A DNA stretch of 64,000 nucleotides from Adineta vaga (lineage: Eukaryota > Animalia > Rotifera), in the NCBI GenBank assembly GCA_021613535.1, contig CP075493.1:14074001-14138000 (forward strand), read 5' to 3'. The notes beneath the pieces were generated by a model that worked only from the letters and a program-made list of their open reading frames with translations, had not been told where the DNA came from and made no database searches. Positions within the stretch are counted from its first letter, which is position 1. Each line of letters starts with the position of its first letter. The position numbers and the translations under genes are program-made. Of the stretch, positions 8,034-31,800 are shown in pieces.

Positions 8034-9401
8034 TCAGATTTTGGAGCTTTGATTCGATCGAGTAGCTCTGCTTGTCTCTTGACCACGACGGATGCGATAG
8101 AGTGGACGACTGAAACAGGGTAGACAAAAAACAAATTTCAGAAAAATAGTTAAGACTGGAAGATATAAGCACAATGAAGAAAGATTATAGAATGCTTTGG
8201 CAACAGTCAATGGAAACCAGAATGGTATTCCTACTGCAGTAACATGTCCAATAGCAAGTAACAATGTTACAGTACCAAGCTTTGATTGTATGAAACGCCA
8301 TTCTCGCCAATTTAAGAGATTACCGATTGCAGGAATACTCGTTATAGCCAATATAGTCATACAAAGGACAGTAAGAACACCGAGTAGAGCTGCTATTTCA
8401 CCTGTTCCAGTCATCAGACTATCCTGAAAGATAACTCGAGTTTGATTATGAATGTTCAGTATTCGAATTTCAGTACGATGGAACCATGAAGGTATATATG
8501 AAGGTGATACAAGAATAATAGTGAACAAAGCGTGACAAAGAGCGATAGCAAATGTTAATAGACCTAAATATTTCCTACTTAACATCCATCGATCTAACCA
8601 TGCTGGAAATCGTCGTTCTCGTGTTCCATAGCTTAATTGAAAGATACATGCAAGATTCGATGGCATATATACGATAGCTAACATAGTGATGGCACATGGA
8701 CCTAATGCCTTATTTATCATAGTTAAGAAGAGTTGATGCCATGTAGATCCTTCATAATTGATATAGTACATGCAAAGTATGTATGTTAACCATAAACAGA
8801 GAATAATCAATGCAAAAACAACAGGAATTCGCCAATGAGGAAAGAGAGATTTCGTATCATTTTCAAGACGGCGTGCAGCTCGAATTGAACCCGCATTAAA
8901 CGATTCAAAATTCATTTCACGTGCAAGTGCAATTACTTTATCTTTCGCAGCGGAATGATCACTAGCAACAAGAATATTATGTGGTTCACCGGCTGTTATA
9001 CTTTGCATGACAAATGAAGACACTGTATTGAACGCTTTGACAACAAAAGCATTGGGTATTGCCTGTTGAAGTTGTTCAGCATTGGACGATTCTTGAGGGT
9101 GTGTTAGTTCAGATGTTTGATTCGATAGATCAATAAGAATTTTGCCGTCGAATAATAATGGTTCATTGCTGAAGCATGATAGAAGAGAATCTTTATAGTT
9201 CTCAGGATGAACAGCTACAAAGATAATTGATGAACGCCGAATACATTCGACAATAGTTACTACTTCATATTTTGTGCCCTGTCGTTTGGCTGGCGAACGG
9301 CTACCTAGTACTACACGAAATCCACTTTCGAATAGACGATAAGCAATTGCTTGACCCATATTTCCAGAACCGAGAACACCGATACATTGATCATCATTCA
9401 T
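8034..9401 (-). CDS. STEAP: STEAP-family metalloreductase (NADPH oxidoreductase + ferric-reductase TM domain), intronless
   Basis: GVLGSGNMG Rossmann motif, LGSR, IDLSN, SNAEQL, VVKAFNTVS, WLDRWMLSRKYLGL, LNWREWRFIQSKLG, two TM histidines, IRRG. Confidence 0.93.
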   Translation of the reverse strand: MNDDQCIGVLGSGNMGQAIAYRLFESGFRVVLGSRSPAKRQGTKYEVVTIVECIRRSSIIFVAVHPENYKDSLLSCFSNEPLLFDGKILIDLSNQTSELTHPQESSNAEQLQQAIPNAFVVKAFNTVSSFVMQSITAGEPHNILVASDHSAAKDKVIALAREMNFESFNAGSIRAARRLENDTKSLFPHWRIPVVFALIILCLWLTYILCMYYINYEGSTWHQLFLTMINKALGPCAITMLAIVYMPSNLACIFQLSYGTRERRFPAWLDRWMLSRKYLGLLTFAIALCHALFTIILVSPSYIPSWFHRTEIRILNIHNQTRVIFQDSLMTGTGEIAALLGVLTVLCMTILAITSIPAIGNLLNWREWRFIQSKLGTVTLLLAIGHVTAVGIPFWFPLTVAKAFYNLSSLCLYLPVLTIFLKFVFCLPCFSRPLYRIRRGQETSRATRSNQSSKI

Positions 9402-10112: not shown

Positions 10113-13100
10113 TTATACTGGACACCAAGTTGATTTCCAAGGATTTGTAAAACCATGTAAAGGAATATCGGTCTCATTTCTTGGATAGAAAATTCGATAA
10201 ATATTAATCTCCAACATATTTTGTACATAAGCTGAATCAAATGTTGGCATTAGTGATGTAGGCTTAGCAGCAGTGTCAGTTAACATTGGATCAATGTATT
10301 TCCAATTACTGTAGACAATCTTTGCAAAACCATTTAGAACAAATGGTTGTGCTGTTGAAGGAGTACGTCCCTTTTCAGTGTCAATAATACGAAAAGCTCT
10401 CATCATATCATCATCTTCATGAATAAGATTATGACAATGGAACATATAATCACCTTTATGCGGACCAAATCTGATAATAACCCAAACTTTTTGACTTGGA
10501 CCCAGATATATAATATCTTTTGGTGACATATTTTCATAAGTTTTCAATCCACCATCACGATCGCGGCGGATAATATAAAAATCTACAAGATGTACATGTA
10601 CAGGATGAAACCAGCCACCACCTGTTTGAAATTTCCAAAGTTCCCATGTATTTTGTCCAATATCATCAGCAGCAATTTTAAATGAATCCCAAGTTTCTCC
10701 ATTGATTACCCATTGATCATTGCTTCGACCAAATACCATTCTTCGATGAAAATCACCATTTGCTGCCATTCTCACTGCAGTAGCGATATCCGAAGCATCT
10801 AAGACTCGTGCAATTGGTCTTTCTGGTTGTGGATTTGTAAGTTGTTCATTAAACTCTGGTGATGAAGTCGGAGTTGTTGATAATATTTGAAGTTTAGCAA
10901 TGTAATTACTATAACAAAAATAAGGTACATCCTTCATCCAATCATCATCAAAATCATTCCACATGTATAAAGTTTGACCTTTGAATGTTGTAAAATCACA
11001 AACAATTTCATATCTTTCAGCAACTCCAATTAATAACCCAGCTGTTGGGAATGTTACTGTTGTTGCTCGATATCCTCCATCAGTTGCAATAACTTTACAT
11101 ATTTGTTGTCCGATATCTTGAAGTGCAGCATTTTTAATTTTGAGTAGATATGGACGAGATACTGCAGCATTTAACATTCGAAAACGATACCATTTTGCTT
11201 CAAGATTCATTAGAGGAAATGGTATTCCAGATACCATATTTATATCACCATAGAAATTTATTTTATCAACATCCTCTTTATCAATGGCTAATTGACATTC
11301 AGAATCAAGAGCTTTATCTTGAAAAATTAAAAGTCTATCTTCGATATTTTCTAAATTCCATGGTTCACCACATCCACCATGTATTTTCTTCGAACTAACT
11401 ACATATAAACCAGCAAGACCATAATAAGCATTATCAGCTGTTATATGCAGTGCATGATCATGATACCAATCCAATGCTGGGCGATTATTTGGATAAACAT
11501 ATTCTTTTGTTTCATTAAAACATGTCTCATCTTCAGCCCATCCATCAAACGGTGGAGCACTTGCTGAACCATGATGATGAATACCAATTGGTCTTCCGAC
11601 TCGATTTCCGATACAAGGTGAAAAACTTTCTTTAAAAAAAGTACCAATTTTATTATTAAATCTTACAATAGATTCATGTCCTGTCGGAACAATAAGTGTT
11701 GGTCCTGGTACATGACCACCATAAGTCATAAATATGGTTCCTGGTTTTGATGCACATTCAGGTATAAGTAGATTAAATGGTGACAATCTTGTATCAAAAA
11801 CATCAATTGTATACGAAAACATACAATGTCCATCGGGACGACATTCTTTTAATAATGGATCAATAACTGATGGATTTTTAAATTCATCTTGAAATAGGTT
11901 CAAGTTGAATGGTGTTCCTTAAAAATGAACGAAATCGTAACTTAGAATATCTTTCTGAAGGATTCGACTTTCGTAGAATGACTCTGTTCAATTTTGCATT
12001 CCTATACTCTCGTTACGCTAGTTCCAGATGACAAGTAAGACCATACGAATTTGCTCTAGAAAATAAATAGATTAGTTTCTCAACTTTAACCCTTAAAAGT
12101 CGAAAAGGTTTCCGGCGAAGCTAACGGATAAATAATTATAAAAACAAAGTATTTGAGGTCAGAAACTAGTACCTTTTGTAGAAAGTTTACTGCTTTATCT
12201 TTATAGCGATTGATGCAATGTCCTGTAGAACAGACAGTCGGTTTTAAAGGATTAGATTCAAATAAAGACACTTAGACTGAAAAATACTATCTTAAACTAA
12301 AGAATAATTGAAAAAGGATTTATTTCATTTATCCAAAATATTCATAACAATGAAATATTTCATTAGAATTGTAATATATGAGAGCAAACGATAGAAATTG
12401 ACTCACGAGATGGTTCTTTTGATCGACATTGAGGTGAGGATGCATTAATCGGCAGTAAAGTTGTGGTAGTCGATGATACAGTGACACCAACCGATAATAA
12501 AGTTGTTTTAGTCGATGACAAAGTTTGAAGAGTTTTCAGTGGCGTCGTTCCTATAAATAGAAATAATATTAGATTTTTTAAAGCATTTATGTATCAACTG
12601 AGAACGAAAATCTTGCCATTAAGAAAAAAGCATGATTTTTTGTTCAAAGAATCGAATAGTCGCAAAGATAAGCGTGTAAAATAGTGAAGACTAAATAATC
12701 AGATAGATCTATACGGAAATGTTTTTAGAGGAACGGTACTAGATATATGAATAAATTGATGTTAGTTGCGCATTTTCTTTCATCATTCACTATCTATATT
12801 CTAAAAGAAAATATATATTACTAGTAGGTCGTTTCGTTTTGTATGTTCTTTTTTTTGTTCTATATGAATTGCATGGACGTGGGTAATTGTTTTCTTCATT
12901 TTCTTGGCCATCATCATTATCATGTTCTTCGTTTTTTCCTATGCCCCATGTATTATCAATGTTCGGTCGTGCTCCATGGTATCCAAAACTTGGAAACGAA
13001 GCAAAATTGCTATGAATGCCGCCATTAAAGTCACCTGTGAAAGGATTAATCCTTGGAACACCTGGATTGTTTACTAATATATACAACGAAAAATATAGTG

Positions 13101-14222
13101 CAACGTAGTTAGATATAAAACAAACGCACAAGGTGTTGATTTAAAATAACGAAGCATATCTATGTGTTCATGTAATGGCATTCTGCTACTGATCAAACTG
13201 GCATCACCTGAAGCAATAAGTTCGGCAACTGAAAACAATTGACCATGTGCATCGATCAATGGTGGAAGAATATAAACTAAATGAATGAATGAACTCTAAG
13301 TCAATTTCAAAAATAACGATAATTATTTATTACCATCTGATTTTGAATAACAAAGCGTTTGCTTAGTTAATCGATCAGCAACTATGGGAACCCGTGGCAT
13401 AAAGGTGAGAAATGGACCACGAAGTGCTGTAAAACAGAAAGCAAATCAATCAATAAAAAATACTAAGATAACATACGAATGCGACGATGATTATATCGAG
13501 CTGCAGGAAATTCAAGTCGTTCATATGGTTTTCGATTGCATTTCTTTATATAAACACTCATATGACCAATATCATCTGGTACTTGACGTCTCTTTAAAAT
13601 GAATAAAGCATATTATACTATGTACATCTCAATCGTTTACGTTATGTTGTGTAAGTGATCGTAGTTTAGGAAGACGATCATCAGTATTATCATGATTTGA
13701 TGACATAAATTCTTGTACTTCCTTTTCTTCCTTTGAATTATCGAAAAGCATTGCATCTTCTATAAAAAAAAATACATGAAATGATCAGTTATTTATGCAT
13801 TATAGTGAAAATGTAATAACACCGTTAAAGTCGATTATTTCTTATACAAAAAAGAGTTTTTGAGAATGAAAAGTGTTTTCTAATGTTAAAATTATCTACT
13901 CTTACTTGGTTCATTCTCTACAACAGTCTTCTTAGTCCACGACGATTCAGAAGAAATCAAGAACATTATCGAACTAGCCACAATGAAAACAAGCACTACA
14001 CCTGTGCAGATAATTTTCATTTTATTTTCTGAGAAAGTAGTCGACCAGGATGAACTAAACAAAAAGAATGTCGAAAAATATTTAACTTCATTGATTGAAT
14101 GTCACTGATACTCACTGTGTGTTTAGTTGATGTCTCTTTGTTGTATTCTTTGAAGCTAATTCTGCTGGCTTCTCGCCTGCATTCACTTCACTATATTTGA
14201 TTTTAGCTATTAATTGAGTCAT
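10113..14222 (-). CDS. Type II membrane-anchored multicopper oxidase (CotA/bilirubin-oxidase type) with long N-terminal extension. Proposed exons 14222-14116, 14054-13906, 13759-13641, 13591-13477, 13426-13334, 13276-13130, 13073-12822, 12550-12407, 11917-10113
   Basis: Copper motifs HHHG, WYHDH, HPVHVH, HCHNLIHEDDDMM in the last exon, which lacks an upstream in-frame ATG and is preceded by an acceptor (tttttaag). Upstream exons splice in frame. The oxidase call is secure; the 12407->11917 junction is the least certain. Confidence 0.75.
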
Positions 14223-16408
14223 TCAATACAGCGAAGTATCTAAAAGAAAAGATTTCTAGAATAACCACTTATCACGATAATAATGATATGTGAATTAACA
14301 TTATGGGAGTCTAAGTTGAAGATCTAGAAAAAAGATCAGCATACAACTGAGAACTTCTATCGTTTATGATTACCTTATAAAAGCTGATATAATAATTTGA
14401 TTTGTGTTCGTCACCATTTATAAAATGTCCTAAGAATCCATTTCTCTTTCATATTATCATCTTATCTAGTTTGCCCATAGAACGTTGCTACTTGCATCAC
14501 ATCTGACCTGTTAGATTGCATGTTCTTGATGACTTTGTATTCTTTTTTATTCAACTTTAACTTTTCGAATGTCCTGTTATCTCACAGATTAGCAAGTTTT
14601 TGTTTCATTTTTATTAACACGTGATTCTTTCTTCAAGTATTTTATCTCTCATGTGAATTTGAGAAGCATACTAGGGTAGCAACGTATTTATGTCCTCTCA
14701 CTTGACCTTATTTGCTCGCATTTTCTCTTCATCATTATTTATTCAGAGTTTTGCATCCTCTCATATTCATATTTATTATCACATGATTTGCTTTACAGGT
14801 GAATAAAGTTACTGGAAGCTTCGAGTTTTTGTTAGAAACGCACCAAACCTCAACTTTTTGAGTTTGGATATGAGTTTGGGTATGTAATTTACATTTCTGT
14901 GAGTCATAAGTATGCAAATCTTCGAAATCTGACTTCTACCCTACTCAAACTCAATACCGAAATTCAAACTCCCAAATAGTTTAGGTTTGAGTTTGAGGTT
15001 GGTGCATGTATAGATTTCTGCTGGTATTTGCCTAGAAATTTGGAATAGATATGTGAGTGTCGGGACAAATGGTAAATTCAATTCTGCACTCTCATGATTT
15101 AGTTTGAGAAAAAGGTCATCGGTCAAAAAACTAGAGGTTTCATTTGGAATAATGTGTGGATGGGTAGTTTCCCCAGCGTTTTGGGTGCAACCCCCAGTTT
15201 TAATCGATAACTCTTGTCTCAAGTTACAACATGAGAGTGCAGAATCATATTTGCTATGTATTCTCAAAGTCTTATAATCATTCTAAACTCCTGAGCGAAT
15301 GTTACAAGGATATATTGAGTGAAACTCCTAGCGGGAAAACTGCGTTTCGTACCACCTCGTCATTCTGAACTTCCGTAGCAGATGTCTCTTACGAACTCCT
15401 AACAAAAAACTATTCAAACTTTTATTCACGGATGTCGGAATGGAAACGACAGGATGTTCGTGAATAAGTTAAAGTTTACGCACTATCGAGAAAATTATAA
15501 GTAATACGCTAGTCTTCACAATATCATAGTCGATAAGAAAAATTAACAGAGATGTCCATGACGACGTCACCGCTGCCGACGTGGCGGTTGGCGGCGCACT
15601 AGCGGTCAATTTTGATCGTTACAATCTTCATGACTATATCATACACAGCAAAAAACATTCTATTCTGAACTCTGAATCGGCCCGCCACATGAATCTTATT
15701 TTTTCAGTTATGATCTTCCGTCCAGCAGTATTTATGAACTCATGCAAAAAATCGTGAAAAAAATTTTCATTCCAAACTTCCGGTCATGCTGAGAGATGTT
15801 CGTAAAGGGTGATACGAAACATGATTCACTCTTCCTAGCTTTTGATCAAATCCGCTGCAATGTTTGTTTTATCTAAATAAACTTAAAATATTTACTATTA
15901 TTCTTTCTTATAGATTGATGTTATGAATATTAGAAGACTCACCTGGTGGCGTAACTAGAATGTTGATAGTAGTGAGACTAAGCCCAACTGCCTGCTTTTT
16001 TTTCTGGTTAGGCCACTAGATTCAACTATATCATCATCATGTGTTCTCTCGAGAGAAAAATATGATATGAATATCACATGATAACATATGATATTCTATC
16101 CTTTTCTTTCCTCGTAGCACTGCATAAACTCTTGTTAGATAAACAATGTTATTGAGTTGCTTGCCGATTAGTTATAAACATTACATATATATATATATCT
16201 ACATATGAATCACAACAAACAACTGATTATATCACATATTACACAAAAACACATGACTATTTTAACACTTTATTATGAAATTCAACAGGCTATCCCGAAC
16301 TCATCTATTTTTTTATATACATGATAGCTTTTAATTATTATAAAAATGTTCTTTTTATATAATAATATTATAAGTCAATGTAAGAAAGATTCTTTTAGAG
16401 ATTTTCCA

Positions 16409-19400
16409 ATGAAACCAAACGACAAAATCATGACTGAACGAAATCAATTGAAACCAAAATATATGATAAGTACTGACGAACAATGCGAAGATTTCTCAGA
16501 CGATGCCGAATTAAATCAACAAGTATCATCTGAGTGAGTATTTAAAAGAGTAATGGATTATATAAACAGTTGCCCAATTTTGTTATTTATAGATCACAAA
16601 GATTGCATGCTTTTATTTCGACTAGATGGAAACATGTTTATAGAAGTCTTCTACTACTAGCTATTGTCGGTGGAATCATGATGTTGGTAATTCCACATTA
16701 CACACGGCACAATAAAAATAATAGTAGAAGCGACAATCAGGGTAAGCTACCCACAAAAGTTTTTGAAAGAAATATCTAAGAGATTCACAAGAAGAAAAAA
16801 TGAATTTAAGATCCTCTTGATTAAAGTGGTTTATTATTCGATGCATTTTTTCAGCGTAGTTTTTACTTTGGTCCATACCTATTTTGAAAACATTGTTATG
16901 ACGCTACTATCCTATAGTAGCTAGACATGCACTAAACCCATACGGTTTCAGTTTGGTAGGTTTGGATATACGAATTTGGATTTGGACTTGGGTATAGAGA
17001 TTGCGTTTGGATAGAGTCAAGGTCAAATTTCGAAACCTTGCATACTTATGACATACAGAAATGTTAATCACATATCCAAAGCCAAACTCAAACTTCTACA
17101 CCTAAGTCTACCGAATCTAAACTGATTAGTTCTGGTGCATGTCTATTACTAGAGGAAGAACCCGGCGTTGCAGATAAAGTTTTCATCTTTAGAGCATAAG
17201 AATGAGTTGCTTATATATGCATATTCTGACTTTATCTACACGTGCCTTCAGCAACACACTCACCTGTATCTTCAAGATGCGTATTCTATATTAATGTTTT
17301 TGTTTTTCATATATCATAGAGATATGGACTGGAAAGGAATACTTGAACATTGATGATCAACTTCCTCAATTACGATCAGGTTCAATACATGTGAGTATTT
17401 TGTAGATGGCGACACATGAGTTCAATGTTTTCTTTCTATTGACATTAGAGAAAACGTAAGACACCCAAAGATCTCGGTTACGTGGATATTTATATTCGTA
17501 AACGAACTAAAAAGGGTGGCTACCGAAAGTCGAAACCGCTTCGTTTTCCCGTCGCTCGTTATGAACGTCATCAGTTTCGTATGTAACACAAAATGCATCT
17601 ATTTCCTTGAATAATACGATCTGTTTTTAAAGCTTTTAATCGTCCATTGCTAAGTCTTGTACCTTGGGTTCCAGTATTCGTTGATCAACATACCCAGCAA
17701 ACAGTTATATATTCTCCAACTCAAGGCAGTATAAGTAAATATATTTTCAAAAATATTCATTGATGAATACTATTCTTATAGGCTATGTAATACCTCCATT
17801 GATAAACCATGATGGTGAACTTTATTCAGTTGGAGAATTAATTAAATATGGGCACGCTAGTTTAGCTAATAGTAGTAATCGAGCGATGTTTCCTTTGAAT
17901 ATGTTATCTAACTTTCACCAAAAACCATGTTTGTTTTTGTTTGTAATCTTTCTCTCTAGGTATTCTTTTTTGTGTACATAGTATATGGTCCTGGCGTACC
18001 GAGAATTAGCCCCGTAACAGGTAGTTTTATTGGTGGAATTCAAACAAATTATGAACATTTCGATATTCCCAAATATGGAAGCACATCTATGAACGATTAT
18101 TCTTTGCATCGATCACACTCTAAAGTAAAAGGACAAAAAGCAAAAGGAAAGAAAGTAGAAGAACAAGCAGTAGAAGAACAGGAAACAGAAGGAAAAGAAG
18201 CAGAAGAAGAAGATGATGAACAAGAAGCAGAAGAACAAGAAGCAGAGGAACAAGAAGCAGAGGAACAAGAAGCAGAGGAACAAGAGGCAGAGGAACAAGA
18301 CGAAGCAGAGGAACAAGAAGCAGAGGAACAAGACGAAGCAGAGGAACAAGAAGCAGAAGAAGAAGAAGAAGCAGATGCAGAAGCACAAAACAACAATGTT
18401 ATATATAAACCACTGTTATATCCTGCAAAACTCCATAAGAAACCGTACTCACACCCATCAAGTAATGTAAAACACATTATCGTACTCTCTTTCAAGATTG
18501 CAAGAGAGAAGAATATATTAAAATCTACATAATTTATTAATATGAGTAAGACTCGATCGAATAATAGAGTTCTATGAGTTAATAATATTCTATCATTCTT
18601 GAATAAAAACTGAGACTAAAAGACAAGTAATAGCTATTGTTAATGGGTAGATATGGATGACTGTGAGAAGAATATTGCTTTCTCATTGACGCCTCCGCGT
18701 TCTAAAGATCATCTTTTGATTTTCTCACCTTCTGCCTATAGATCATGGTATGAATGGACCTGTTCACAAATATGATAAAAATGCACATCGAATTGCATCA
18801 TCGTACAATAGTGTTGGTTATTCAACATTAAGTCTTTGTGGAAGACATCGTATTGATAAACTCAAAAGACGATATCTTTCGTCAAAGGTGCCCAACGTCA
18901 CACTTGGTGAGAAAAAATTAAAATATAAGAAAGATTTTAGTATCTTGTTTATGCACTTGCAAGAGTCAGATGTAAAATAGTGAAATCGAGAATCTAATAT
19001 TCATGAGAAGAATCATCCTATTTCGTAATGTTGAACTTTGCAGAATCAGTTCCGACCAATCCCTGAAATTGTTGAGAATCGGTAGAACTCGATTCCCGCC
19101 TGTGGATCGGATTTAGAGGATCGGTGCGATGCAGTTGATTCCTATAATTTTCAAAAATATACAAAAAATATCATCAAACTTTTTATTGAAGATGAAAGTG
19201 CGGAGAGCGCTGAAGTCAACGATTCAGGAAAACTAGAGAATTGCAAGTGTCAAAAACCAATTTTAACACCATCTGAACTGTATGAACATGGTCTCTTCAT
19301 CATTCGTATGTAAAAATTAAAGATTTAGATGTGCTGATATATTGAAAAAAAAATTTCTAGTTCATTTAACAAATGTAAGTGATAGCAGTGTTAAAAAAGC

Positions 19401-20454
19401 TTGTCAACGACTTCAACAACTGAAAGAATCGCTTCATCAATTACATCCCGATTTTGGCTTAGAAGTAACATTAGGACTTGGATATGATAAAACCAAAGAA
19501 TGGCTTTCTCAAGCAAACATTTCTTTTCCAAAAGCTTTTATTCGATTTAAAAGAAAACTTGGTCCCACAAAAAAAAACATGCCAAGCACAGGTAATGTAG
19601 TTTTCGTACGATTGAAAATGATTAAAAAATAAGTAATATTCTTATCTACAAATTAATATTTCAGGAGGAGACATTCTTGTTGATATTAGAAGTACTCGTA
19701 AAGATCTTTGTTTTGAATTAGGCCGACAATTCTATCAATTGATTTCTCCCGAATGCATCGAGAAATTAGATGATACATTTGGTTTTGCATATATGAGTTC
19801 TAAAAAAACAGGACTTGCAAAAGATTTTATAGGCTTTGAAGACGGAAATGATAATCCAGAAGGTTATACAGAAAGAGTATGTTATATTATTGAGATGAAC
19901 AACGTATTGTCTTATGTAATTTTTTCGATAGGCAGCAGCTGCACTTATAGGAGAACAAGACGATGAATTGATTCATGTTGGAGGATCTTATGCATTAACA
20001 CAGAAATGGTTCCATAACTTGACTAAATGGAATGAGTACGTTAATATTATTAGATATGATTGATTCGCAATGAAAAGTTTCTTTATAAATAATTAGGCTT
20101 TCCCAAATACACCAAGAACTTGTCATCGGAAGATCGAAAGGAGATGAAAGTATAGAAACAAAACCAAGAACAGATATATCTCATGTTGGTCGCGTACATC
20201 TCGAAGAAGAAGATGGTACAGAAATCGAAGTTGTTCGAAAATCTCTACCACATGGTGATGTGAGCAAGGGTGGACTTTTTTATATTGGATTTGCATCAAA
20301 TACACAAAAACACGAAAGACAACTTAATAGTATGGTTGGCAATGAAAATGGTGTTTATGATCGATTAATGGATTATTCAACACCACATACAGGAAATTAT
20401 TGGTATATTTGTTCAAAATCTGTGTATGAACGATTGTTTTCCTCGAAAAATTAG
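16409..20454 (+). CDS. Type II membrane-anchored DyP-type (dye-decolorizing) heme peroxidase with long N-terminal extension. Proposed exons 16409-16533, 16593-16741, 17320-17390, 17449-17578, 17633-17725, 17782-17928, 17982-18461, 18742-18906, 19192-19305, 19361-19591, 19665-19876, 19932-20035, 20097-20454
   Basis: DyP motifs MPSTGGDI, GFEDGNDNP (GxxDG), GGSYALTQKW.HNL..W, QELVIGRSK, SHVGR, VVRKSLPHG, GLFYIGF, DRLMDYS...TGNYWY; all junction phases are compatible from the first ATG. Confidence 0.8.
16922..17145. mobile_element. MITE-like element in intron 2 of the DyP gene
   Basis: Terminal inverted repeat TAGACATGCAC...GTGCATGTCTA with internal inverted gtttgg/ccaaac motifs; a related decayed end (ggtgcatgtata) near 15001-15012; no clear TSD. 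Confidence 0.6.
18157..18382 (+). repeat. Coding 15/18-nt tandem repeat (gaacaagaagcagag) encoding EQEAE/EQDEAE
   Basis: Directly visible array inside exon 7 of the DyP gene; it generates several spurious ORFs in other frames. Confidence 0.9.
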
Positions 20455-21448
20455 TAGAACTTTTCTTTGTATGATTTAAAGACACTCAAGTTTTTTTTTT
20501 GAAACTATAAATCAAGCAGTTAGCCATTGTAATGTAAAGAAAAAAAGAGAGATAATGGACATGCGACGTTTTTTTTCTGCAAAAGTCATAAAGAAAACTA
20601 CTGCTTTGTTGCGATTCATATTGATTCATTAATTTCTGCGCTTGAAAGAAAACAATAAATTGACGATCGTTACTCTTCTACGTAAAACTTATATTGATAG
20701 TAGAAATTCATTTCGGAAATAATTCTAGTTACGATTCTGACGTCGTTACCATCATTTTAAAAGGTAAAACCGTTTGTATTATGATGATCAATGTTACAAA
20801 GCGATGGATAATCGAAATAAATGATAATAACTTCGTTGGTAATTACTCATAAAATACTGTCTAAAAAGGATGGGCATACTATGATTAGAAAACGGTAATT
20901 ACTGAAAATCGATGTGAAGTACTTTGATAAAGCGTCCATAAAAAAGCATTTGTTAATCTCTATTTACATTGAAATATAGATCTTGAACATTCATAAAGAA
21001 AAATCACATTTCCTTTATATTAAAATGAAGTTACGTAAGGTAAATAAGAACTGGAGTATCTTATAGTTAAGCATGTCCATGTATTTCATTCTTACAGTCT
21101 GAAGATGATGAGAACTTTATGTAGTATTGTTAGTCCAAATGAACTCATTGCTTCAGCCGTATTACCACTTGTATACCAATTGAATCTGATTTTGAACATG
21201 TATTTAAAACAAGTACTACTCATGAACATCTCGATCAAACTAAAACACAATTTTGGCAATATGCACCGAACTATGTCACTATGTACAGTGCTGCAGCGGA
21301 TGATCAATTTCTATAGTAGTGAAAAATGTATTTCCTTCATTGAATCATCAGATAAAAATAGGCGATTTAGTTCAATTTACTATTAATGAATTATTTCAAA
21401 GGAAATTTATTAATGAACATGATGGAATTAGTAATGCTCGAATTAAGT

Positions 21449-24400
21449 TTATTTTCGAAATTTGAGAACTGTATCTAATGCATTTTGTAGATTTTGTTCT
21501 CTTGTTTCAATCCAATGAATATTCATCTTGACTTGATCAATTGCTTGTTGGCGGGCGATTTGTCCAACACCAGCATTTGGATATTTTGTAAATAGTTCAT
21601 TCATCTTAAACAGAAAATAATGTTTAGATAAGGAAATATTGAAGTTTTTACTTCATCAAGATAAGATTCCTTTTCAAATGAACGTGTAATTGAAAGTATA
21701 GCCGAACCAAATCGATAATTTTGTAATGTAAAACTAAAAATTCAAACACATTAGAAAGAAATTTCTTTCATGATATTCAAAAATTCTAACGTATTGATTA
21801 AATTTGCATAGTTATTCTTATAAAAATTCCAAACAATTTCTCTTCCAATTCCATGTCGACTCATATAACCCATCATAGTAAAATAATCTTGACGTCTTAT
21901 TGTATTTGATCCATCTGTTAGTCCCTCATTGAGTAACCTTATTCAAAACAACATAAAATATTGCTGATATTACATTTAGAAAGAATTTCCTTACCGATTC
22001 AATCGATCTCTATTCTGTGTTGAACTAATTGCCATTAAAGCACGTGTTTGTTCATGTGATGATGTTGCTATTTGATAATAGTTCAACATTTGATTCCAAT
22101 CATTCTCATTCTCGTCACTTCTTAAATGATAGGTATATACAGTGGATAAGAAATCTGCAGGAATACTAAATATAAATGAATGTATTCTATTCTTAATTTC
22201 AATGATTTTAAACAATGTTTTACTCAATATTGATATTGCTATTGTTAAAATATTCTTTCGGAATTGATTGAAATAACATACTGGCTTTTAGTATTGCAGG
22301 AACATGATTCATTCGACAGAGTAATGCAAATCGTAAACTTTTGACTAATTTTGAATTATGATTGTCATTTAAATGAAAGATTATGATATTTTCAAGTGTC
22401 ACATCATTCGAAAGAATTTGTTGAATTGTAAAATTCTAAATAAAAACCATCAGATTCAAAAAGAACGCATCTTTTTCTTATTACTTGAAATGTCATCAAT
22501 GTATCAGGTAGATAATCGATGAGATCTACTAAAATATCCCAATGATATTGAAACGTTCTCCAATGAACATATTCCGTTATATTTTGTTCTCCTAATGAAT
22601 TTATAATTCGTAATGGTTCATGATAATCGATTAAACCTTTATAAGCAAGTAGAAAAGTATCCTGAATGAAATTGATTTTATCTTCATTGGAAAAAAACTA
22701 AAATAAAAATGATAAAAACTGATGAAAAGAAGAGTTTATTTACTGTTGGTTCCGATTGGATAACCGATGTAAAACGTTCGGATGAAAATGAATATTTTGT
22801 CACGTGAAAACTTTGAAAATCACGATTACATTTAATCCATGAATAAGTCTTGTTCGATATTGTTCGTGTCTCTTGTTCATTTTCAAGAATAAAATTGATT
22901 CGCTCATGATCAATATCAGAATCGGAATAATTTCCACCGAGAATACAATCTAGATTGATTTTCCAACGGTAATTCTTATTTAAATTTGATATATCAAATA
23001 TATCGGATAAAATGAAACGTGATTGAGTAAATGATAGTTTCGTTGATTTATCTTCATTCGTTAAATCAATGTTAACTAACGGATAATTCATTTCATTTAA
23101 CCAACTTTTCATAAATTCTTTTCCATTTGTTCGATTATTTAATGTTCTATTAAAAAATCGGTTTAAATCACCAACATTAAATGCATTGCTTCTTAAATAT
23201 TCTTGTAGATTTTCACGAAAAACTTCTTCACCAACTATTTTATTTAACATACGCATCAAACTTATTCCTTTTGAATACGCTAATCCATCAAGATAACTCA
23301 AGATTTCCGATATACTTGTCGCATTTTCCACCACAATCGAATGAGAATATGGTTTGGCATCATCCCACATGATTGGTATTGTATCGTCCGTTAAGATTTG
23401 TAATTCCTTTTGAAAACATGAAAATGAATAGTACTCATCTCATTCTTTCTTACCATATTCCAATCAGCATACTTTTCTGCGAATGTTTTTCGACAAAGCC
23501 AACTAATCATAACTTCACTGAACCAAAGATCATTCCACCATTGAAATGTGACATAATTTCCAAACCCTAAATCAAATTTTTTACTTCACGAAAAGGTATG
23601 AAGTTCAACTTACAAGAATGACCAATTTCATGAGCAACAATATCTGCATATTGTTGTTTTTGTAATAGAGTTGCAATTTTTTCATTATAAATTATTCGTT
23701 CTTCACGAAATGTAATTAAACCGGAACTTTCCATTGCCGTCGATCCCATATCATAAATCGCCAAAATATCTAATGAATCTGATTGAAAATCTTTACATCT
23801 CAACTCATTAAGTTACCTTTTTTTGGAGGTAAAGCTTCGGTAATATTGAAATATGTTTTATAAAATGGAATTGCAGTTGAAGCAATATCAAATGCTAATC
23901 TCGAATGATTTTGTTCTGTTAGTTCTCGTCGAGCCCATATTGTTATCTAAATTCAATTCATCACAGGCAATTCTTTTCAATAGCATACAAAATTCGTCTA
24001 CCGTTGGTGATTGATCACTATCCGAGACTTTTCCATATGTATCGGGAAGAATTGCCCAAGAAGCAACATAAGTACTCATACGAAATGTTTCAGCAAATAT
24101 TGTATGACGTAAATTATCTTCAACGGTTTGTTTGATCTTTAATAAAAAGAATTTATAGTTTTAATTGAGAGAAAAATGATAACATACAATAGGAAAATTG
24201 GCTAAAGCAATTGTATTTTGAGGATGACGAATTGTGAGTTTAAATTGAGCTTTGATATGTGGTTCGTCAAAACAAGGAAATGCTCTTCGAGCTTCGGTTG
24301 CTCGAAGTTTTGTTGCTAATAATGTACTAAATAGAGAATTGTTTAACTCTTTCAGATGTTTCGATTCAAATTACATACCCATTTATTTGATTTTTATCGG

Positions 24401-25031
24401 GAAAAAAACTTTGATAAAAACCAATACTAGGATTTTTTAGATTGATGACGAATTTTTGTGTTAATTTATATTGATTTGTTGAAAATAAAGAATTATTTAC
24501 TAAACGTAAACTTATGTAATCATTTGGAAGGTATCTTTTCATGATTAGAGAATGTTGAAGACCATTTTCTAATAGAATTGGTTCTTCAATTTCAACCATA
24601 TCTCTTGCATGATAAATTAATTGTTTTATTGGTTTTTTTAAATTAAAATCAATTGTAACTTGTCCTTTCATAGTTATTTCTTGGATATCATTACAGATAT
24701 ATTCTAATTCATAACTATTAACAAGTAAATCAGTTAATAAACGTGATTGACATTCATCTTCAATACATTCAGTTGGATTTTGTGTTACTGTACTTGATGA
24801 TGATGATGATGATGGTGGTGATACGGTTTCAAGGACAGTAATATATTTTGTTCGTCGTGGAAGAAGGCCAGCTAATAAACCAACAGTAAGAAGAGATGCA
24901 CAATAAAAAAAGATGGCAATGATAATCCATGATTTTGGTAATTGACGTAATGATGAAAAGCGAGTATTTCTTCGACTATTTCTTTCTGATTCACCTAAAT
25001 CAAAACTTTTTTTTGATCGACTCATTGGCAT
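21449..25031 (-). CDS. M1-family aminopeptidase (aminopeptidase N/ERAP-like), type II membrane, multi-exon
   Basis: N-terminal TM and Ser/Thr stalk; ARRAFPCFDEP, MSTY, TAMESSGLITFRE, HEIGH-x18-E, AYSKG; ERAP1-C-like region ending QVKMNIHWI. Confidence 0.9.
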
Positions 25032-26196: not shown

Positions 26197-29100
26197 ATGG
26201 CAAATAAAATCATCAATGATACTATCGATCTGGCAATAAGAACAGACACCAAACAAATTTCTATTCCAATTTCATCTAATGGTCGAAAATCTTGTGGTTT
26301 AGATTGGGCTGAATCCTCTTGGACACGATGGATCTATGTTATTTTCTGGACATGGTTAAATCCAATTTTAAATGTTGGTTACAAACGTCAATTAAATGAT
26401 GATGATTTATTCGATGTCTCGTCAAATGATGAATGTAATCAGTTATTGAACAAATTTGAAACAGTTTGGAATAAACATGAACAAAAATATAAAGAGATTA
26501 GTACATGGAAAATAATCATAGAAACATTTTGGAAACCAACTTTATTCGCTGGTCTCATTTTAATACCTTACATCGCTGTAAAAATAGCACAACCTCTACT
26601 TATAAGACAACTCATTCTTACTATTAATGATCCTACTATACCATCCTATGTCGGTTATTTATATGCTATTGGTTTAGGACTTTCCACTCTTTTACAAGCA
26701 CTCATGCATCAACAACATTTCCTACGTATCACTCGTGTTGGAATGCATGTACGTATTGCATTATCATCTATTATTTATAAAAGATTGTTATCCTTACCAA
26801 CGAATGCTATTTTGCAAACAACAACAGGTCAACTAGTTAATTTAATTTCGAATGATGCAAGTAAATTCGAAGATCTTAGTTTAGTTCTTCATCAGTTATG
26901 GTCAGCACCATTAGAAGCAATTATTTCTTTTATTTTTATTTGGAATCAAATTGGTGTTCCAACATTATTTGGTTATGGTATATTGTTACTATTAGTACCG
27001 TTACAAACATTTTTCAGTAGAAAATCTGGAAAATATCGAAAGAATACAATGGAATGGTCGGATAAACGTGTTAAAGTGATTAATGAAATCTTAGTTGGTT
27101 GTCAAATTGTTAAAATGTATCGATGGGAAGAAGCATTAGAAAATGTTGTTTATGATGCAAGAAAAAATGAACTGAAAAATATTCGAAAAATAGGTCGAAT
27201 ACGTGGATTGAATATGGGTATATTTTTTGCATCATTACCATTGATTACACTGACCACATTTGGCGGAAGTTGGTTAATGGGTCAAATATTATCTGCTACA
27301 AATATATTTACTACTGTAACATTCTTATCTAATATAAGATTTCCAATGATAAACAGTGTCCCTTTTGCAATAGGAAGATTAAGTGAAAGTAGAGTAGCAG
27401 CAAAACGTATTGCTCAATTCATGAATTTATCAAAACAATCTTGTACGAAAACATTTGAAAAACATTCAAGCCATGTTTCTACTTGTACATCAGGCAATAT
27501 AGTAATGAGTAAAGCTTCGTTCGTTTGGGATACAACTCAATCATCTCAATTAGTGAATATAGATTTGAATGTGAAAGATGGTTCACTAATTGGTATTATC
27601 GGAACAATTGGTTCATCGAAATCATCTCTTCTGTCCGCTATACTTGGTGAAATGTCTCTTGTTGAAGGTACTTGTAAGATAGATGGTAGAATTGCTTATG
27701 TATCTCAAATTCCTTGGTTATTTGCTGGTACAATTCGAGAAAATATTTTATTTTGTAAATCATATCAAAAAGAAAAATATGAACAAGTGATAGAATCATG
27801 TCAATTAATTACTGATTTACAATCATTTCCAGCCGGTGATCAAACAATTATTGGTGACAAAGCAGAAAATTTAAGTGAAGGACAAAAAGTTCGTGTCTCA
27901 CTTGCGCGAGCTTTATATACCGAAGCTGATATTTATTTATTGGATGATCCATTAGCTGCCGTTGATCCATCTGTTGCCAAAAATATTTTCAAACATTGTA
28001 TTAGTAACGAAGGTTTTTTAAAGAATAAAACACGATTATTAGTAACACATCAAATTCAATTCTTATCCGAACTTGATCATTGTGTTCTATTAGATCATGG
28101 ACGAATCGAAAAACAAGGTACATTCGATGATTTATTATCTTTAGAGAAAATAAAACAATCCTATGAAAATCAATTCAATGAAACTAAACAACGACATGAT
28201 GATACGCATGTTTTCAATAAAGATTTAAGCAAAGTTCAATCAACAACTATGGATGAAAATAGTATTATCAAAGAAGAAGTATCCATTGATGGATCAACTA
28301 ATCTCAATGTTTGGTTAAAATTATTCACTTCTGGATACGGTTGGTTTGGATTAATTCTATTAATCTTTTTAATGTTAATAGGTCAAGGTATTTATGATGC
28401 GACTAATAAATGGTTAAGTATATGGTCATCAAAAATCGCATCTGAACAACGTCAAATACATTATCCATATATCTATTTAGGATTAGTTATTGGTACATGG
28501 ATTATTTCATTAATTCGTTCGGATTATTTTTTTCATTTGATCTTATGTGGTGCATCAACATTGCATAATAGTATGTTTAAAGGTGTTCTATATACTTCAT
28601 TGAGATTTTATGAAAGTAACCCCATTGGACGAATATTGAATCGATTCAGTAAAGATCAACAAGTTCTCGATGATTTATTACCTTTAGCATTCTATGATAC
28701 AGTTCAAACATTGATACTCGTATTAGGAAGTCTTGTCATTATTGGTATGTCAAATCCGTGGGTTTTATTAATACTACTTCCGATTCTTCCGATAGTTATT
28801 TGGTTACGAAGATATTATATAAGATCGAGCCGAAGTCTCAAACGTTTAGAAAGTGTAAGTCGAAGTCCTGTTTATGCATTATTTTCTTCATCATTGAATG
28901 GATTAATGACAATTCGAGCATTTAATATGGAAAATGAATTTGTCAATCTTTTTATCGAGAAAGTCAATGCAAATACGCGTGCATATTTTATATTTGTTTC
29001 TTCAAGTAGATGGTTTGGTTTACGATTAGATCTAATGACTTGTTGTTTAACATTTCTAACCGCAATTTTATCGATTGTTTTACGTCGTAGTGTAGATTCC

Positions 29101-30039
29101 TCATCGATTGCATTGAGTTTATCTTATTGTATAAGTTTAACTTCTATCTTTCAATGGGCAGTACGTCAATCAGCTGAAACAGAAAATTATATGACGAGTG
29201 CGGAGAGAATCGATGAATATTCTCGTCTTCCTCCTGAAGAAGATTTTTACAATGGAGAAACAAAACCACCGATACATTGGCCAAACGAAGGCAAAATTCA
29301 ATTTGATAATTATAAATTAAGATATCGTCCTGAACTTGAACCTGTTTTAAAAGGAATGAATTTAGAAATAATTCCACAAGACAAAGTTGGTATTATTGGT
29401 CGTACAGGTGCTGGTAAATCATCGATATTTCAAGCACTCTTTCGTTTAATTCCTAAATCAACAACAGAAGGGAAAATTCTAATTGATGGAATTAATATTA
29501 ATGAAATTAGTTTGAATGATTTGCGATCGATATTGAACATCATTCCACAATCTCCCGTCTTATTTAGTAATACACTTCGATATAATTTAGATCCATTTCA
29601 ACAATATACAGATCAACAATTATGGAATGCATTAGAAGCTGTTCAATTGAAAATTAAGATTGAAAATTATCCAGAGAAACTGAATACTCAAATAGCAGAG
29701 TGTGGAAGTAATTTTAGTGTTGGTGAATGTCAATTAATTTGTGTAGCAAGAGCAATACTTAAACCAAGTAAAATCTTACTTATCGATGAAGCAACAGCAC
29801 ATGTTGATACACGAACAGATGAAATGATTCAACAAATTTTACGAGAAAAATTCGTGAATCAAACAATTTTAACAATTGCACATCGAGTAAATACAGTGAT
29901 GGATAGTGATAAGATTGTTGTGATGAATAATGGTTTTGTTGAACAATATGGAACGCCAAATGAAATATTTAGTGAACATAGAGAATTCTTGACTGAAATG
30001 AAGAATGAGAATAATGATGAACTATTGTCTATTACGTGA
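26197..30039 (+). CDS. ABCC4: ABC transporter subfamily C (MRP4-like), intronless
   Basis: TMD-NBD-TMD-NBD without TMD0; YLLDDPLAAVD, GRILNRFSKD, GRTGAGKSS, LLIDEATAHVD, IAHR. Confidence 0.92.
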   Translation: MANKIINDTIDLAIRTDTKQISIPISSNGRKSCGLDWAESSWTRWIYVIFWTWLNPILNVGYKRQLNDDDLFDVSSNDECNQLLNKFETVWNKHEQKYKEISTWKIIIETFWKPTLFAGLILIPYIAVKIAQPLLIRQLILTINDPTIPSYVGYLYAIGLGLSTLLQALMHQQHFLRITRVGMHVRIALSSIIYKRLLSLPTNAILQTTTGQLVNLISNDASKFEDLSLVLHQLWSAPLEAIISFIFIWNQIGVPTLFGYGILLLLVPLQTFFSRKSGKYRKNTMEWSDKRVKVINEILVGCQIVKMYRWEEALENVVYDARKNELKNIRKIGRIRGLNMGIFFASLPLITLTTFGGSWLMGQILSATNIFTTVTFLSNIRFPMINSVPFAIGRLSESRVAAKRIAQFMNLSKQSCTKTFEKHSSHVSTCTSGNIVMSKASFVWDTTQSSQLVNIDLNVKDGSLIGIIGTIGSSKSSLLSAILGEMSLVEGTCKIDGRIAYVSQIPWLFAGTIRENILFCKSYQKEKYEQVIESCQLITDLQSFPAGDQTIIGDKAENLSEGQKVRVSLARALYTEADIYLLDDPLAAVDPSVAKNIFKHCISNEGFLKNKTRLLVTHQIQFLSELDHCVLLDHGRIEKQGTFDDLLSLEKIKQSYENQFNETKQRHDDTHVFNKDLSKVQSTTMDENSIIKEEVSIDGSTNLNVWLKLFTSGYGWFGLILLIFLMLIGQGIYDATNKWLSIWSSKIASEQRQIHYPYIYLGLVIGTWIISLIRSDYFFHLILCGASTLHNSMFKGVLYTSLRFYESNPIGRILNRFSKDQQVLDDLLPLAFYDTVQTLILVLGSLVIIGMSNPWVLLILLPILPIVIWLRRYYIRSSRSLKRLESVSRSPVYALFSSSLNGLMTIRAFNMENEFVNLFIEKVNANTRAYFIFVSSSRWFGLRLDLMTCCLTFLTAILSIVLRRSVDSSSIALSLSYCISLTSIFQWAVRQSAETENYMTSAERIDEYSRLPPEEDFYNGETKPPIHWPNEGKIQFDNYKLRYRPELEPVLKGMNLEIIPQDKVGIIGRTGAGKSSIFQALFRLIPKSTTEGKILIDGININEISLNDLRSILNIIPQSPVLFSNTLRYNLDPFQQYTDQQLWNALEAVQLKIKIENYPEKLNTQIAECGSNFSVGECQLICVARAILKPSKILLIDEATAHVDTRTDEMIQQILREKFVNQTILTIAHRVNTVMDSDKIVVMNNGFVEQYGTPNEIFSEHREFLTEMKNENNDELLSIT

Positions 30040-30801
30040 TAGAATATATCATTTTCTGTTAGTTTAATCCAAACATTAATGCTAATAGTTACGTCATAGA
30101 AACAAAATATTTCAAGTTCTAAATTTATGTTAGAATGAGAGTGAAGTGTTTGAAAAGAACCGTTCATCTATTCACCCACACCTGTAGTATAAATAAAATA
30201 GCATTTCCGATTTTGACCTTCAGCATACTGGTTGACACGTAATAGAAAATATTTCTGTTAATAATATTCTTCATCAAGATTACTATTATATATAAAAATG
30301 CTTCTTTGAACTTCAATACCTTCACAGATTAAAAGATGTAAATCATTTGACATCTGAATACATGACAACTATCTTTTAATAATGATTCATTCACGTCATC
30401 CAGATTACTTCAGCAATGCTAATAACTTGATTTTAGATTTAAAAATACATTCATGCATCATCGACATTTTTTCAATGAATAAAATACAATTTACTTCTGC
30501 AGAAAAATGTTTTGCTTAAAAAACTTTTGTATTTGCGTGACTCTATCAAAATGATATTCTCGACATCCATTTTCTTTTCTTCATTGGCTACTATGACAAA
30601 AATAAACATTAATAATCATGAAGTCAATGACAAAAAAAGAGATTTTAATTCATTGATAGTGCATCTGCATTTTTGACATTAAGATACTAATATCTGTCAT
30701 CATTAAATCTACGTAATTTATAACTTTCTCGTGACGTATTCTAAATTATCTAACTATATATATAGAGAGAGAGAGAGATAAAAGTGGAACAAAAATTAAC
30801 A

Positions 30802-31800
30802 ATGTCGATTTCATTAGCTGACATTAGTATACATATCACACGAGCCATTCTACCCATAATTATTATTATTGGTATTTTGGGTAATTCATTCAATATTGGT
30901 GTATTAAGTCGACAGAGATTATACAATCATGCATGTTCTCGGTATTTTCTTGCCGTTGCAATTAATAATCTATTTTTTACGGGTATTATTCTTATCTATC
31001 GTTTACTTGTAAATGAATATCAATATGATCTAGCGAATAGTTCCATAATATCATGCCGAATAATTAGTTATATTACTACTTTAAGTTCATTTATTTCACC
31101 TTATTTACTTATCTTAGCTTCAATTGATCGATTTTGTGCAAGTTCAAGTAATGTTCATATGCGTCAATTTAGCTGTATTCGAACAACTCAATGGATGATT
31201 TTCATTATTATTGCGATATTTTCAATTTTTTTCATTAATATTCTAATTCTATTTGATATACAACCAACAAAAGGCTTTATTTGTGTTCTACATGCGAATA
31301 CTTTGTACGCTCAAATATACATATTTACGCAAGTTTTTTTGTATGCTGCTATTCCACCTTGTTTGATGGTTCTTTTCGGTTTTATGACTATCCGTAATAC
31401 AAGTCGATCACGTACAGTTCAAGTAGTATCATCACGATATAATCGTACAGAACAACAACTTGCTCGTATGGTATTATTTCAAGTGGGTGTGTATGTTCTG
31501 CTCACTCTACCAACGAGCAATTTTTATCTTATATCAGCTTTACCTAATACTATCAGCACAACACCTATGTTTTCATTCGTATCAAAAATATTTCAATTAT
31601 TATTTTATTGTTCATATAGTTCACCATTTTTTTTATATCTTTTATCTGGTCGTATTTATAGACAAGAACTTATTCAATTACTACGCAAGATATTTCGAAT
31701 TTGTTTTCATAATCAAGTTGCACCAACATTAGGTTCAAATATTAACGCACCAATGCAGACAACAATCCCTCCACGTCAAGAAATCGACTTTATTGACTAA
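30802..31800 (+). CDS. Rhodopsin-like (class A) GPCR
   Basis: 7 hydrophobic segments, GN in TM1, ASIDRF in TM3, PFFLY in TM7; first ATG at 30802. Confidence 0.85.
   Translation: MSISLADISIHITRAILPIIIIIGILGNSFNIGVLSRQRLYNHACSRYFLAVAINNLFFTGIILIYRLLVNEYQYDLANSSIISCRIISYITTLSSFISPYLLILASIDRFCASSSNVHMRQFSCIRTTQWMIFIIIAIFSIFFINILILFDIQPTKGFICVLHANTLYAQIYIFTQVFLYAAIPPCLMVLFGFMTIRNTSRSRTVQVVSSRYNRTEQQLARMVLFQVGVYVLLTLPTSNFYLISALPNTISTTPMFSFVSKIFQLLFYCSYSSPFFLYLLSGRIYRQELIQLLRKIFRICFHNQVAPTLGSNINAPMQTTIPPRQEIDFID

Follow-up and report, generated by a model that had tools for sequence, protein, structure and literature searches.

A candidate bdelloid-specific membrane-anchor module joined to a multicopper oxidase and to a DyP peroxidase in two head-to-head genes of Adineta vaga

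Type II anchored ectoenzymes that arose by exon shuffling are a known kind of protein. Type II transmembrane serine proteases such as enteropeptidase, matriptase and hepsin have a short cytosolic tail, an uncleaved signal anchor, a stem and a catalytic C-terminus on the outside, and brush-border ectoenzymes such as sucrase-isomaltase and aminopeptidase N carry a hydrolase above the membrane on a signal anchor and an O-glycosylated, Ser/Thr-rich stalk. We analyzed a 64,000-nt stretch of chromosome 1 of the bdelloid rotifer Adineta vaga (the window, C1:14074001-14138000; the assembly consists of six contigs and 100.8 Mb) in which two genes stand head to head and begin with similar anchor modules. 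One, on the minus strand (the minus gene, 10113..14222), continues into a multicopper oxidase (MCO) of the bilirubin-oxidase/CotA type, and the other, on the plus strand (the plus gene, 16409..20454), into a DyP peroxidase. We consider it likely that both are genuine fusion genes of a bdelloid-specific family of type II membrane proteins, in which a cassette is combined with swappable C-terminal domains by exon shuffling. A first-pass annotation of this DNA had described a carrier-plus-enzyme system; that reading is supported and widened by the family reported here, with the module at ~27 loci and at least a dozen kinds of partner.

Exon ends were located in the sequence, and lengths, phases and splice signals were computed for each exon with the exons left unjoined. 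Both genes are open spliced frames with AG acceptors and GT donors. In each gene the introns after exons 1-7 have phases 2, 1, 0, 1, 1, 1 and 1, and the two genes agree in the lengths of exon 2 (149 nt) and exon 6 (147 nt). By tblastx, exons 3-7 are collinear and in the same orientation, with ~40-60% identity (linked E 5e-22). The homology of exons 3-7 is far beyond chance. The shared seven-exon 5' parts, the phases and the equal sixth exons had all been noted in the first-pass annotation and are confirmed. It had also given exon 5 as 93 nt in both genes by using a GC donor at 17726 in the plus gene; this donor was rejected, as RNA-type contigs use the GT at 17735, which makes exon 5 of the plus gene 102 nt long and leaves it in phase 1.

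Evidence for splicing of the plus gene came from contigs of three RNA-type runs, X1 and X2 of one study and X8 of a second, which were compared with positions 14650-20600 of the window (the plus gene and most of the spacer) together with those of a DNA-type comparison run, X5. The 'RNA?' labels of these runs are a guess, and it is the intron-less contigs that show their cDNA nature. All 12 junctions of the 13-exon gene, with GT..AG ends, were found in X1, X2 and X8 contigs: 16533>16593, 16741>17320, 17390>17449, 17578>17633, 17734>17782, 17928>17982, 18461>18742, 18906>19192, 19305>19361, 19591>19665, 19876>19932 and 20035>20097. None of the 12 was found in X5, where the introns were covered instead. 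Transcript contigs start at 16397-16407. The ~795-aa product begins with a tail and a membrane helix, recognized by hydropathy (exons 1-2, 16409-16533 and 16593-16741; together 16409..16741), followed by the orphan domain (17320..18100), which occupies exons 3-6 and the first part of exon 7 (17320-17390, 17449-17578, 17633-17734, 17782-17928 and from 17982), as seen from tblastx and RNA. Within exon 7, a 15-nt tandem repeat (18153..18368, +) codes for an acidic (AEEQE)n linker. Exon 8 (18742..18906) and exons 9-13 (19192-19305, 19361-19591, 19665-19876, 19932-20035 and 20097-20454; together 19192..20454) contribute the peroxidase. Depth in the bin 18431-18629 equals that expected from the last 31 nt of exon 7 alone, so there is no read-through to the stop at 18532. 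Transcripts ending at that stop, which had been named beforehand as evidence that would speak against fusion, were looked for, and intron 7 has no cover beyond the exon. The in-frame fusion proposed for the plus gene, which depends on 18461>18742 and 18906>19192, is thus seen in three RNA-type runs, and spliced RNA-type contigs show the joining of module and DyP.

The plus-gene product was searched exon by exon. Pfam recognized Dyp_perox_C in exon 13 (70.7 bits) and exon 12 (22.4 bits; cut-off 20), and exons 9-13, each as a separate unjoined query, align in order to DyPs or to rotifer paralogs. The best matches are class B-type enzymes, namely Dictyostelium DyPA (7o9j), YfeX (5gt2) and DypB (3qnr). 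GFEDG in exon 11 aligns to GFVDG of DypB, the GxxDG motif, and SHVGR and VVRKSLPHG in exon 13 align to SHVSR and IVRQSLPYG of 8ohy, the sites of the proximal His and distal Arg. The A. vaga genome has two DyP paralogs, L030 (C5:2.96 Mb) and L031 (C1:11.6 Mb), with 53% identity over the last exon. They have the exon structure of the fused DyP, no module exon nearby and no signal peptide. The fused DyP belongs to a three-copy, intron-bearing rotifer family in which the other two genes are free-standing. Exon 8 contains an in-frame ATG at 18750 that is homologous to the start Met of L030 (L030:2893-3021 (-)), and the acceptor at 18741/18742 lies 8 nt upstream of it; L031 starts within its equivalent of exon 9 (~640-723). 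Exon 8 would then be the former first coding exon of a stand-alone DyP gene, and together with ATG 18750 it probably marks the fusion seam. The earlier statement that the first exon of neither enzyme has an in-frame start of its own therefore applies to the MCO exon and to the exon at 19192; the DyP part taken in full does have one. Pattern scans with the last DyP exon, which see close relatives only, returned no giant-virus or prokaryote relatives.

The minus gene has nine exons on the minus strand: 14222-14116, 14054-13906, 13759-13641, 13591-13477, 13426-13334, 13276-13130, 13073-12822, 12550-12407 and 11917-10113. They total 2931 nt, the exact coding size of an A. vaga protein at NCBI, I4U23_004634 (P0001, 976 aa), whose sequence the exon translations match, with 100% identity over the MCO exon. 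The public A. vaga gene models are evidence-weighted, having been made by funannotate with PASA, Augustus, GeneMark and EVM (PMC8494291). By hydropathy and flank charges, exons 1-2 (13906..14222, phases 2 and 1) encode a putative cytosolic tail and a single membrane helix (P0001 ~50-68). Exons 3-7 (12822..13759) encode the orphan juxtamembrane domain (P0001 ~112-264, from tblastx and family alignments) and then a low-complexity stretch, acidic first and basic next. Exon 8 (12407..12550), with phase 1 on both sides, is a Ser/Thr-rich linker with Ser/Thr-rich equivalents at L047 and L102, and exon 9 (10113..11917) holds a complete MCO in 596 aa. A protein of A. ricciae, P0133 (partial, as it ends at the contig end), is collinear with P0001 through Met1, helix, module, Ser/Thr linker and MCO, with 48% identity across 530 columns, and its locus, L102, has the same exon layout as the minus gene. 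On L047, a Logan contig with a 76%-identical MCO ortholog, a Ser/Thr-rich frame precedes the MCO exon, whose acceptor context is also the same. Agreement of the proposed fusion with the public model, and its conservation in A. ricciae, support a real module-MCO protein.

The enzyme at the end of the minus gene is an intact-looking MCO. Pfam scores for the exon were 36.4 bits for Cu-oxidase_3 (cut-off 21) and 72.1 bits for Cu-oxidase_2 (cut-off 20.4), with the same result for P0001, and its closest solved relatives are Myrothecium verrucaria bilirubin oxidase (2xll, E 2.4e-66) and CotA (1gsk, E 4e-29). The enzyme families named in the first-pass annotation, a CotA/bilirubin-oxidase-type MCO and a DyP, are thus those found by Pfam and by sequence matches in the PDB. 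All four copper motifs (HxH, HxH, HxxHxH and HCHxxxHxxxxM) are present in P0001, and the alignment shows no variation at the ligand columns H113/H115, H152/H154, H437/H440/H442 and H493-C494-H495/H499/M504. The MCO is single-copy in the A. vaga genome. Relatives of 646-647 aa in Rotaria and A. steineri, 67-70% identical, begin with an ordinary signal peptide, whose place is taken by the module in the genes of A. vaga and A. ricciae. It appears, therefore, that the A. vaga MCO has lost the signal peptide kept by its relatives in other bdelloids, with the module replacing it.

Outside bdelloids, the nearest relatives of the MCO are not bacterial. The best prokaryote match in an invariant-motif scan of 185,579 bacterial and archaeal species genomes was cyanobacterial, at 38% identity, compared with 55-61% on giant-virus contigs, so a bacterial origin is not supported. 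In IMG/VR, 29 giant-virus contigs (among L064-L096; query P0001:377-976) carry full-length relatives in this higher range. Relatives of ~650 aa that are 55-62% identical bear the IMG automatic name 'FtsP/CotA-like', and their contigs look like giant viruses of a chlorovirus-like kind: one of 327 kb has genes for chitin synthase, a PL14 lyase, HNH/AP2 and a D12 methyltransferase, and another carries a PBCV_P4 homolog. MCOs occur in giant viruses (PMC7162819, PMC9270025). In a quick maximum likelihood tree with a bacterial root (Shimodaira-Hasegawa-like approximate likelihood ratio test (SH-aLRT) support only, the careful search being unfinished), bdelloids form one clade (support 100) within a virus/metagenome clade, which a long branch parts from bacteria. 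With non-metazoan nearest outside relatives and bdelloids nested among them, the MCO was probably acquired horizontally, though this placement is compatible with transfer in either direction. Of the claim that both enzymes are horizontally acquired microbial-type oxidases, the non-metazoan affinity of the MCO stands; a bacterial source is not supported, as giant viruses are nearest, and the DyP belongs with its intron-bearing rotifer relatives.

Are the two genes a special pair? With exon 6 of either gene as query, 27-28 places were found in the A. vaga genome. Over exons 3-7 the two modules are 46% identical; the minus-gene module is 57-64% identical to seven other loci (sum over exons 3-7), with the plus gene ranking 13th among its relatives, and the best relative of the plus-gene module is L014 (54%), with the minus gene ranking 10th. 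An origin as sister copies by local inverted duplication was rejected, because each module is closer to members elsewhere in the genome. The special paralog pair of the first-pass annotation thus dissolves into two family members that happen to sit head to head. Module loci are clustered, with eight at C1:13.3-16.3 Mb and five at C3:13.5-15.4 Mb. A profile built from the core (P0001:112-264) and six relatives matched 128 representatives at E<=1e-3 among 1.84 billion proteins. The only organism-named matches were from A. vaga, A. steineri, A. ricciae and Rotaria socialis, and the remainder were short metagenome fragments, which points to a bdelloid-specific family with ~27 loci in A. vaga. Short proteins that consist of the module alone, 264-340 aa in length, occur in A. 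vaga, A. steineri and Rotaria socialis. In full-text literature searches we found no published account of the module family, of a bdelloid DyP or of a bdelloid MCO, in keeping with the earlier impression that the architecture had no prior description; the gene models are already public, and we found no paper on the family itself.

The C-terminal partners of the module are diverse. Listing them across bdelloid proteins had been suggested as a check, and it revealed many enzyme types. Pfam was run on database proteins and on downstream reading frames at 14 + 5 A. vaga loci, with L019-L021, L024, L025 and L028 left aside, and at least a dozen further kinds of C-terminal domain were found attached to the module in Adineta. 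Proteases include S8 subtilases (with fn3_5 or PA), S53 sedolisins, PA/M28 and an aspartic protease; oxidoreductases include a three-domain laccase-type MCO, a flavin amine oxidase and a GMC oxidoreductase. Further partners are Cupin_1, two kinds of alpha/beta hydrolase, SBP_bac_3, several orphan domains and the repeat types NHL, FG-GAP and MORN. At C1:15.18 Mb, 1.04 Mb from the MCO/DyP pair, a second two-gene locus (L016:2214-2660 and L017:1986-3140) has adjacent module genes on the same strand with Cupin_1 and a flavin amine oxidase as partners, both potential H2O2 producers. At L035:3485-5689 (-) and L037:3388-5766 (+), on C5 and C2, the module continues into a 735-793-aa frame that has no Pfam family and is followed by a family-2 glycosyltransferase gene; these resemble two products of a duplication, now on different chromosomes.

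Every member starts with 35-60 residues that lead into one strongly hydrophobic helix (Kyte-Doolittle 2.0-3.4 across 19 residues). Of 19 members, 18 carry more positive charge on the N-terminal side of this helix than on the C-terminal side (means about +3.3 and +0.3). The family is thus predicted to have the features of a type II signal anchor, namely an N-proximal helix, no cleavable signal peptide and a positive N flank, and these predict an N-in/C-out orientation with the enzyme outside. After the helix come a variable spacer, a core of ~155 aa whose columns average 74% identity across seven members, an acidic stretch, a basic stretch of Pro, Arg and Lys and usually a Ser/Thr-rich stalk, in whose place the plus gene carries its (AEEQE)n repeat. 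No Pfam match to the core was obtained for 29 members even at E<=5. A VIA search with the low-confidence model of the module gave no solved-structure match above Z 3.5, and a feature search of the ESM Atlas with the module gave no usable match. A SEA domain was recognized neither by profile (29 members, E<=5) nor by fold (best Z 3.5, low-confidence model).

Exons from the fifth onward are bordered by phase-1 introns, and phase 1 on both sides of an exon gives a symmetry that permits exon shuffling. We propose a cassette that would consist of a ~45-aa cytosolic tail, a signal-anchor helix, a beta-rich orphan juxtamembrane domain of ~155 aa and a low-complexity stalk, acidic, basic or Ser/Thr-rich, and that would be joined through phase-1 introns to interchangeable C-terminal domains. 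Shuffling is most simply explained by an upstream module gene that began to splice onto the 5' end of an enzyme gene already in place. The cassette would give endoplasmic reticulum targeting and a membrane tether to enzymes with no signal of their own, and would hold the enzyme on the lumenal or extracellular face atop a flexible stalk, from which it might be shed at the basic stretches. From these features we infer the topology, the location and the physiological role of the fusion proteins.

Several observations weigh against this explanation. The RNA contigs break inside the 15-nt repeat of exon 7, so that no single contig links the module to DyP, and the link in RNA is made by overlapping cover of one genomic exon, exon 7. 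For the minus gene, no A. vaga RNA-derived protein fragments spanning the junction were found, and only the A. ricciae ortholog matched. Word shares of 0.27-0.30 in the RNA-type runs are about what the plus gene would contribute by itself, which could mean weak expression of the minus gene in those samples (contigs give no expression levels). The topology is read solely from the positive-inside rule; the AlphaFold2 model of the module, mostly beta, has low confidence (mean predicted local distance difference test score, pLDDT, 57); and MORN repeats, one of the partner types, are usually cytosolic. Class B-type DyPs are also normally cytosolic, and one routed into the secretory pathway might not receive haem. 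Could the minus-gene fusion be a prediction artefact, with the module gene stopping at ~12790 or after the linker exon and the MCO a separate gene or pseudogene? The RNA contig evidence covers the plus gene, leaving the minus fusion on sequence grounds, and the family does include module-only members. We nevertheless regard an artefact as very improbable: a TAA two codons before the acceptor at 11917 shuts the MCO frame, a start at the first Met in this frame would cut off residues invariant across all relatives, the copper ligands are all intact, the fused layout recurs in A. ricciae and the linker exon in L047, and RNA demonstrates the sister architecture in the plus gene. The module might instead be a sorting or pro-region that routes its cargo to a secretory granule, the egg shell or the gut lumen and is cleaved at the basic stretches to free a soluble enzyme. 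In most members the module is followed by conserved basic runs, partners such as the S8 and S53 proteases, with their pro-domains, belong to enzymes that are typically released, and the short module-only proteins would fit as well. A strictly conserved cleavage motif is lacking, however, and we think this proposal doubtful, though it is compatible with membrane anchoring and not exclusive of it.

Two other explanations concern what the enzymes do together or with their neighbors. The two genes could form a dedicated oxidative unit, an O2-using MCO and an H2O2-using DyP co-regulated from a divergent promoter and acting on the same substrate in the same compartment. Both are oxidoreductases and head-to-head neighbors, and the locus that pairs a module-cupin with a module-amine-oxidase gene offers a parallel. 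On viral contigs the MCO adjoins a second, laccase-type MCO and a PF00141 haem peroxidase, and the metagenome protein P0075 is an MCO-PF00141 peroxidase fusion, so the pairing of MCO and peroxidase recurs independently; this viral neighborhood is the only real support that we found for cooperation of the two. Bidirectional control, put forward in the first-pass annotation, is not supported: the divergent ATGs are separated by a spacer of 2186 nt (14223..16408), compared with a criterion of ~1 kb for bidirectional promoters; the plus transcript starts at ~16397, and in the RNA-type runs no contig covers 14650-16240. Moreover, neither module is the sister of the other, the family is for the most part scattered and joined to non-oxidative partners, word shares suggest that the two genes are unequally represented in the RNA-type runs, and with eight family loci within 3 Mb of C1 adjacency can arise by chance. 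We therefore think a dedicated unit unlikely. A further suggestion, by analogy with hephaestin/Fet3p and reductases, is that the anchored MCO is a metal oxidase (a ferroxidase or cuprous oxidase) that would handle iron or copper with a neighboring STEAP-like metalloreductase. An intron-less 455-aa open reading frame (ORF) with F420_oxidored and Ferric_reduct domains, the STEAP architecture, does lie at 8034-9401 (-), where it follows the MCO on its own strand after ~700 nt, and giant-virus MCOs and ferric reductases have been discussed as iron-uptake genes (PMC7162819). The nearest solved relatives of the MCO are bilirubin oxidase and CotA laccases, however, with no ferroxidases among them, and such a role seems quite unlikely to us.

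The spacer between the two genes holds one arm (14861-14955) of a small repeated element, the other lying in intron 2 of the plus gene (17000-17094); these 95-nt inverted copies are 78% complementary, and the element may be a miniature inverted-repeat transposable element (MITE). Neighboring genes lie at 22684-25031 (-), 26197-30039 (+), 30784-31800 (+) and 33947-34960 (-). Among them are a full ABC transporter of 1280 aa in one exon, a fragmented M1 aminopeptidase and two ORFs for receptors of the rhodopsin family. Farther along, a 1034-aa frame at 44388-47492 (+) has reverse transcriptase, RNase H and integrase zinc-binding domains, as in the pol gene of a long terminal repeat (LTR) retroelement.

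No other animals are known to carry as many foreign genes as bdelloids. How foreign genes gain promoters, introns and, most of all, targeting signals is poorly understood, and the module family offers a sequence-defined case, in which one rotifer-only N-terminal module sits on at least twelve kinds of enzyme or binding domain. It contains what would be the first candidates for a membrane-tethered DyP and for a membrane-tethered bilirubin-oxidase-type MCO in an animal, and it indicates giant viruses as the nearest source of the latter. More tentatively, tail, anchor, orphan domain and stalk, bounded by phase-1 introns, could act as a bdelloid 'domestication cassette' that repeatedly captures foreign or cytosolic enzyme genes of viral, bacterial or fungal type by exon shuffling and displays their products on the surface as ectoenzymes. 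We see this as possible and somewhat short of probable; if true, genes acquired horizontally by an animal would have a general way of obtaining secretory targeting.

How do these fusion proteins compare with known systems? Their predicted plan is that of the type II transmembrane serine proteases. The stems of those proteases, however, are built from SEA, LDLa, CUB and SRCR domains, whereas the orphan domain that forms the rotifer stem matched neither a Pfam family nor a known fold, and they are a single protease family, whereas the rotifer cassette carries a dozen unrelated enzyme types. Brush-border ectoenzymes have no sequence relation to the rotifer proteins. Exon 8 of the minus gene is a stalk of their Ser/Thr-rich kind, but the plus gene has an acidic repeat in its place, and the rotifers add a conserved domain between helix and stalk. 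Among MCOs, bilirubin oxidase (2xll) and CotA (1gsk) are of the same subfamily by sequence, with all four copper motifs, but they are soluble enzymes, secreted or of the spore coat, and the rotifer MCO is an exon of a membrane-anchored animal fusion. Hephaestin and Fet3p likewise place an MCO on a single membrane helix; both, however, are ferroxidases from a different MCO branch, are of type I with the helix at the C-terminus, and lack an N-terminal cassette. The class B (P) DyPs 7o9j, 5gt2 and 3qnr are soluble, mostly cytosolic proteins of ~300-350 aa, whereas the rotifer DyP domain is split over five to six exons behind ~480 aa of anchor, module and linker. Finally, the giant-virus neighborhoods resemble the rotifer locus in that the closest MCO homologs (55-61%) stand beside a peroxidase gene, but the viral peroxidase is of the PF00141 family, not a DyP, and the viral genes are not fused to the rotifer module.

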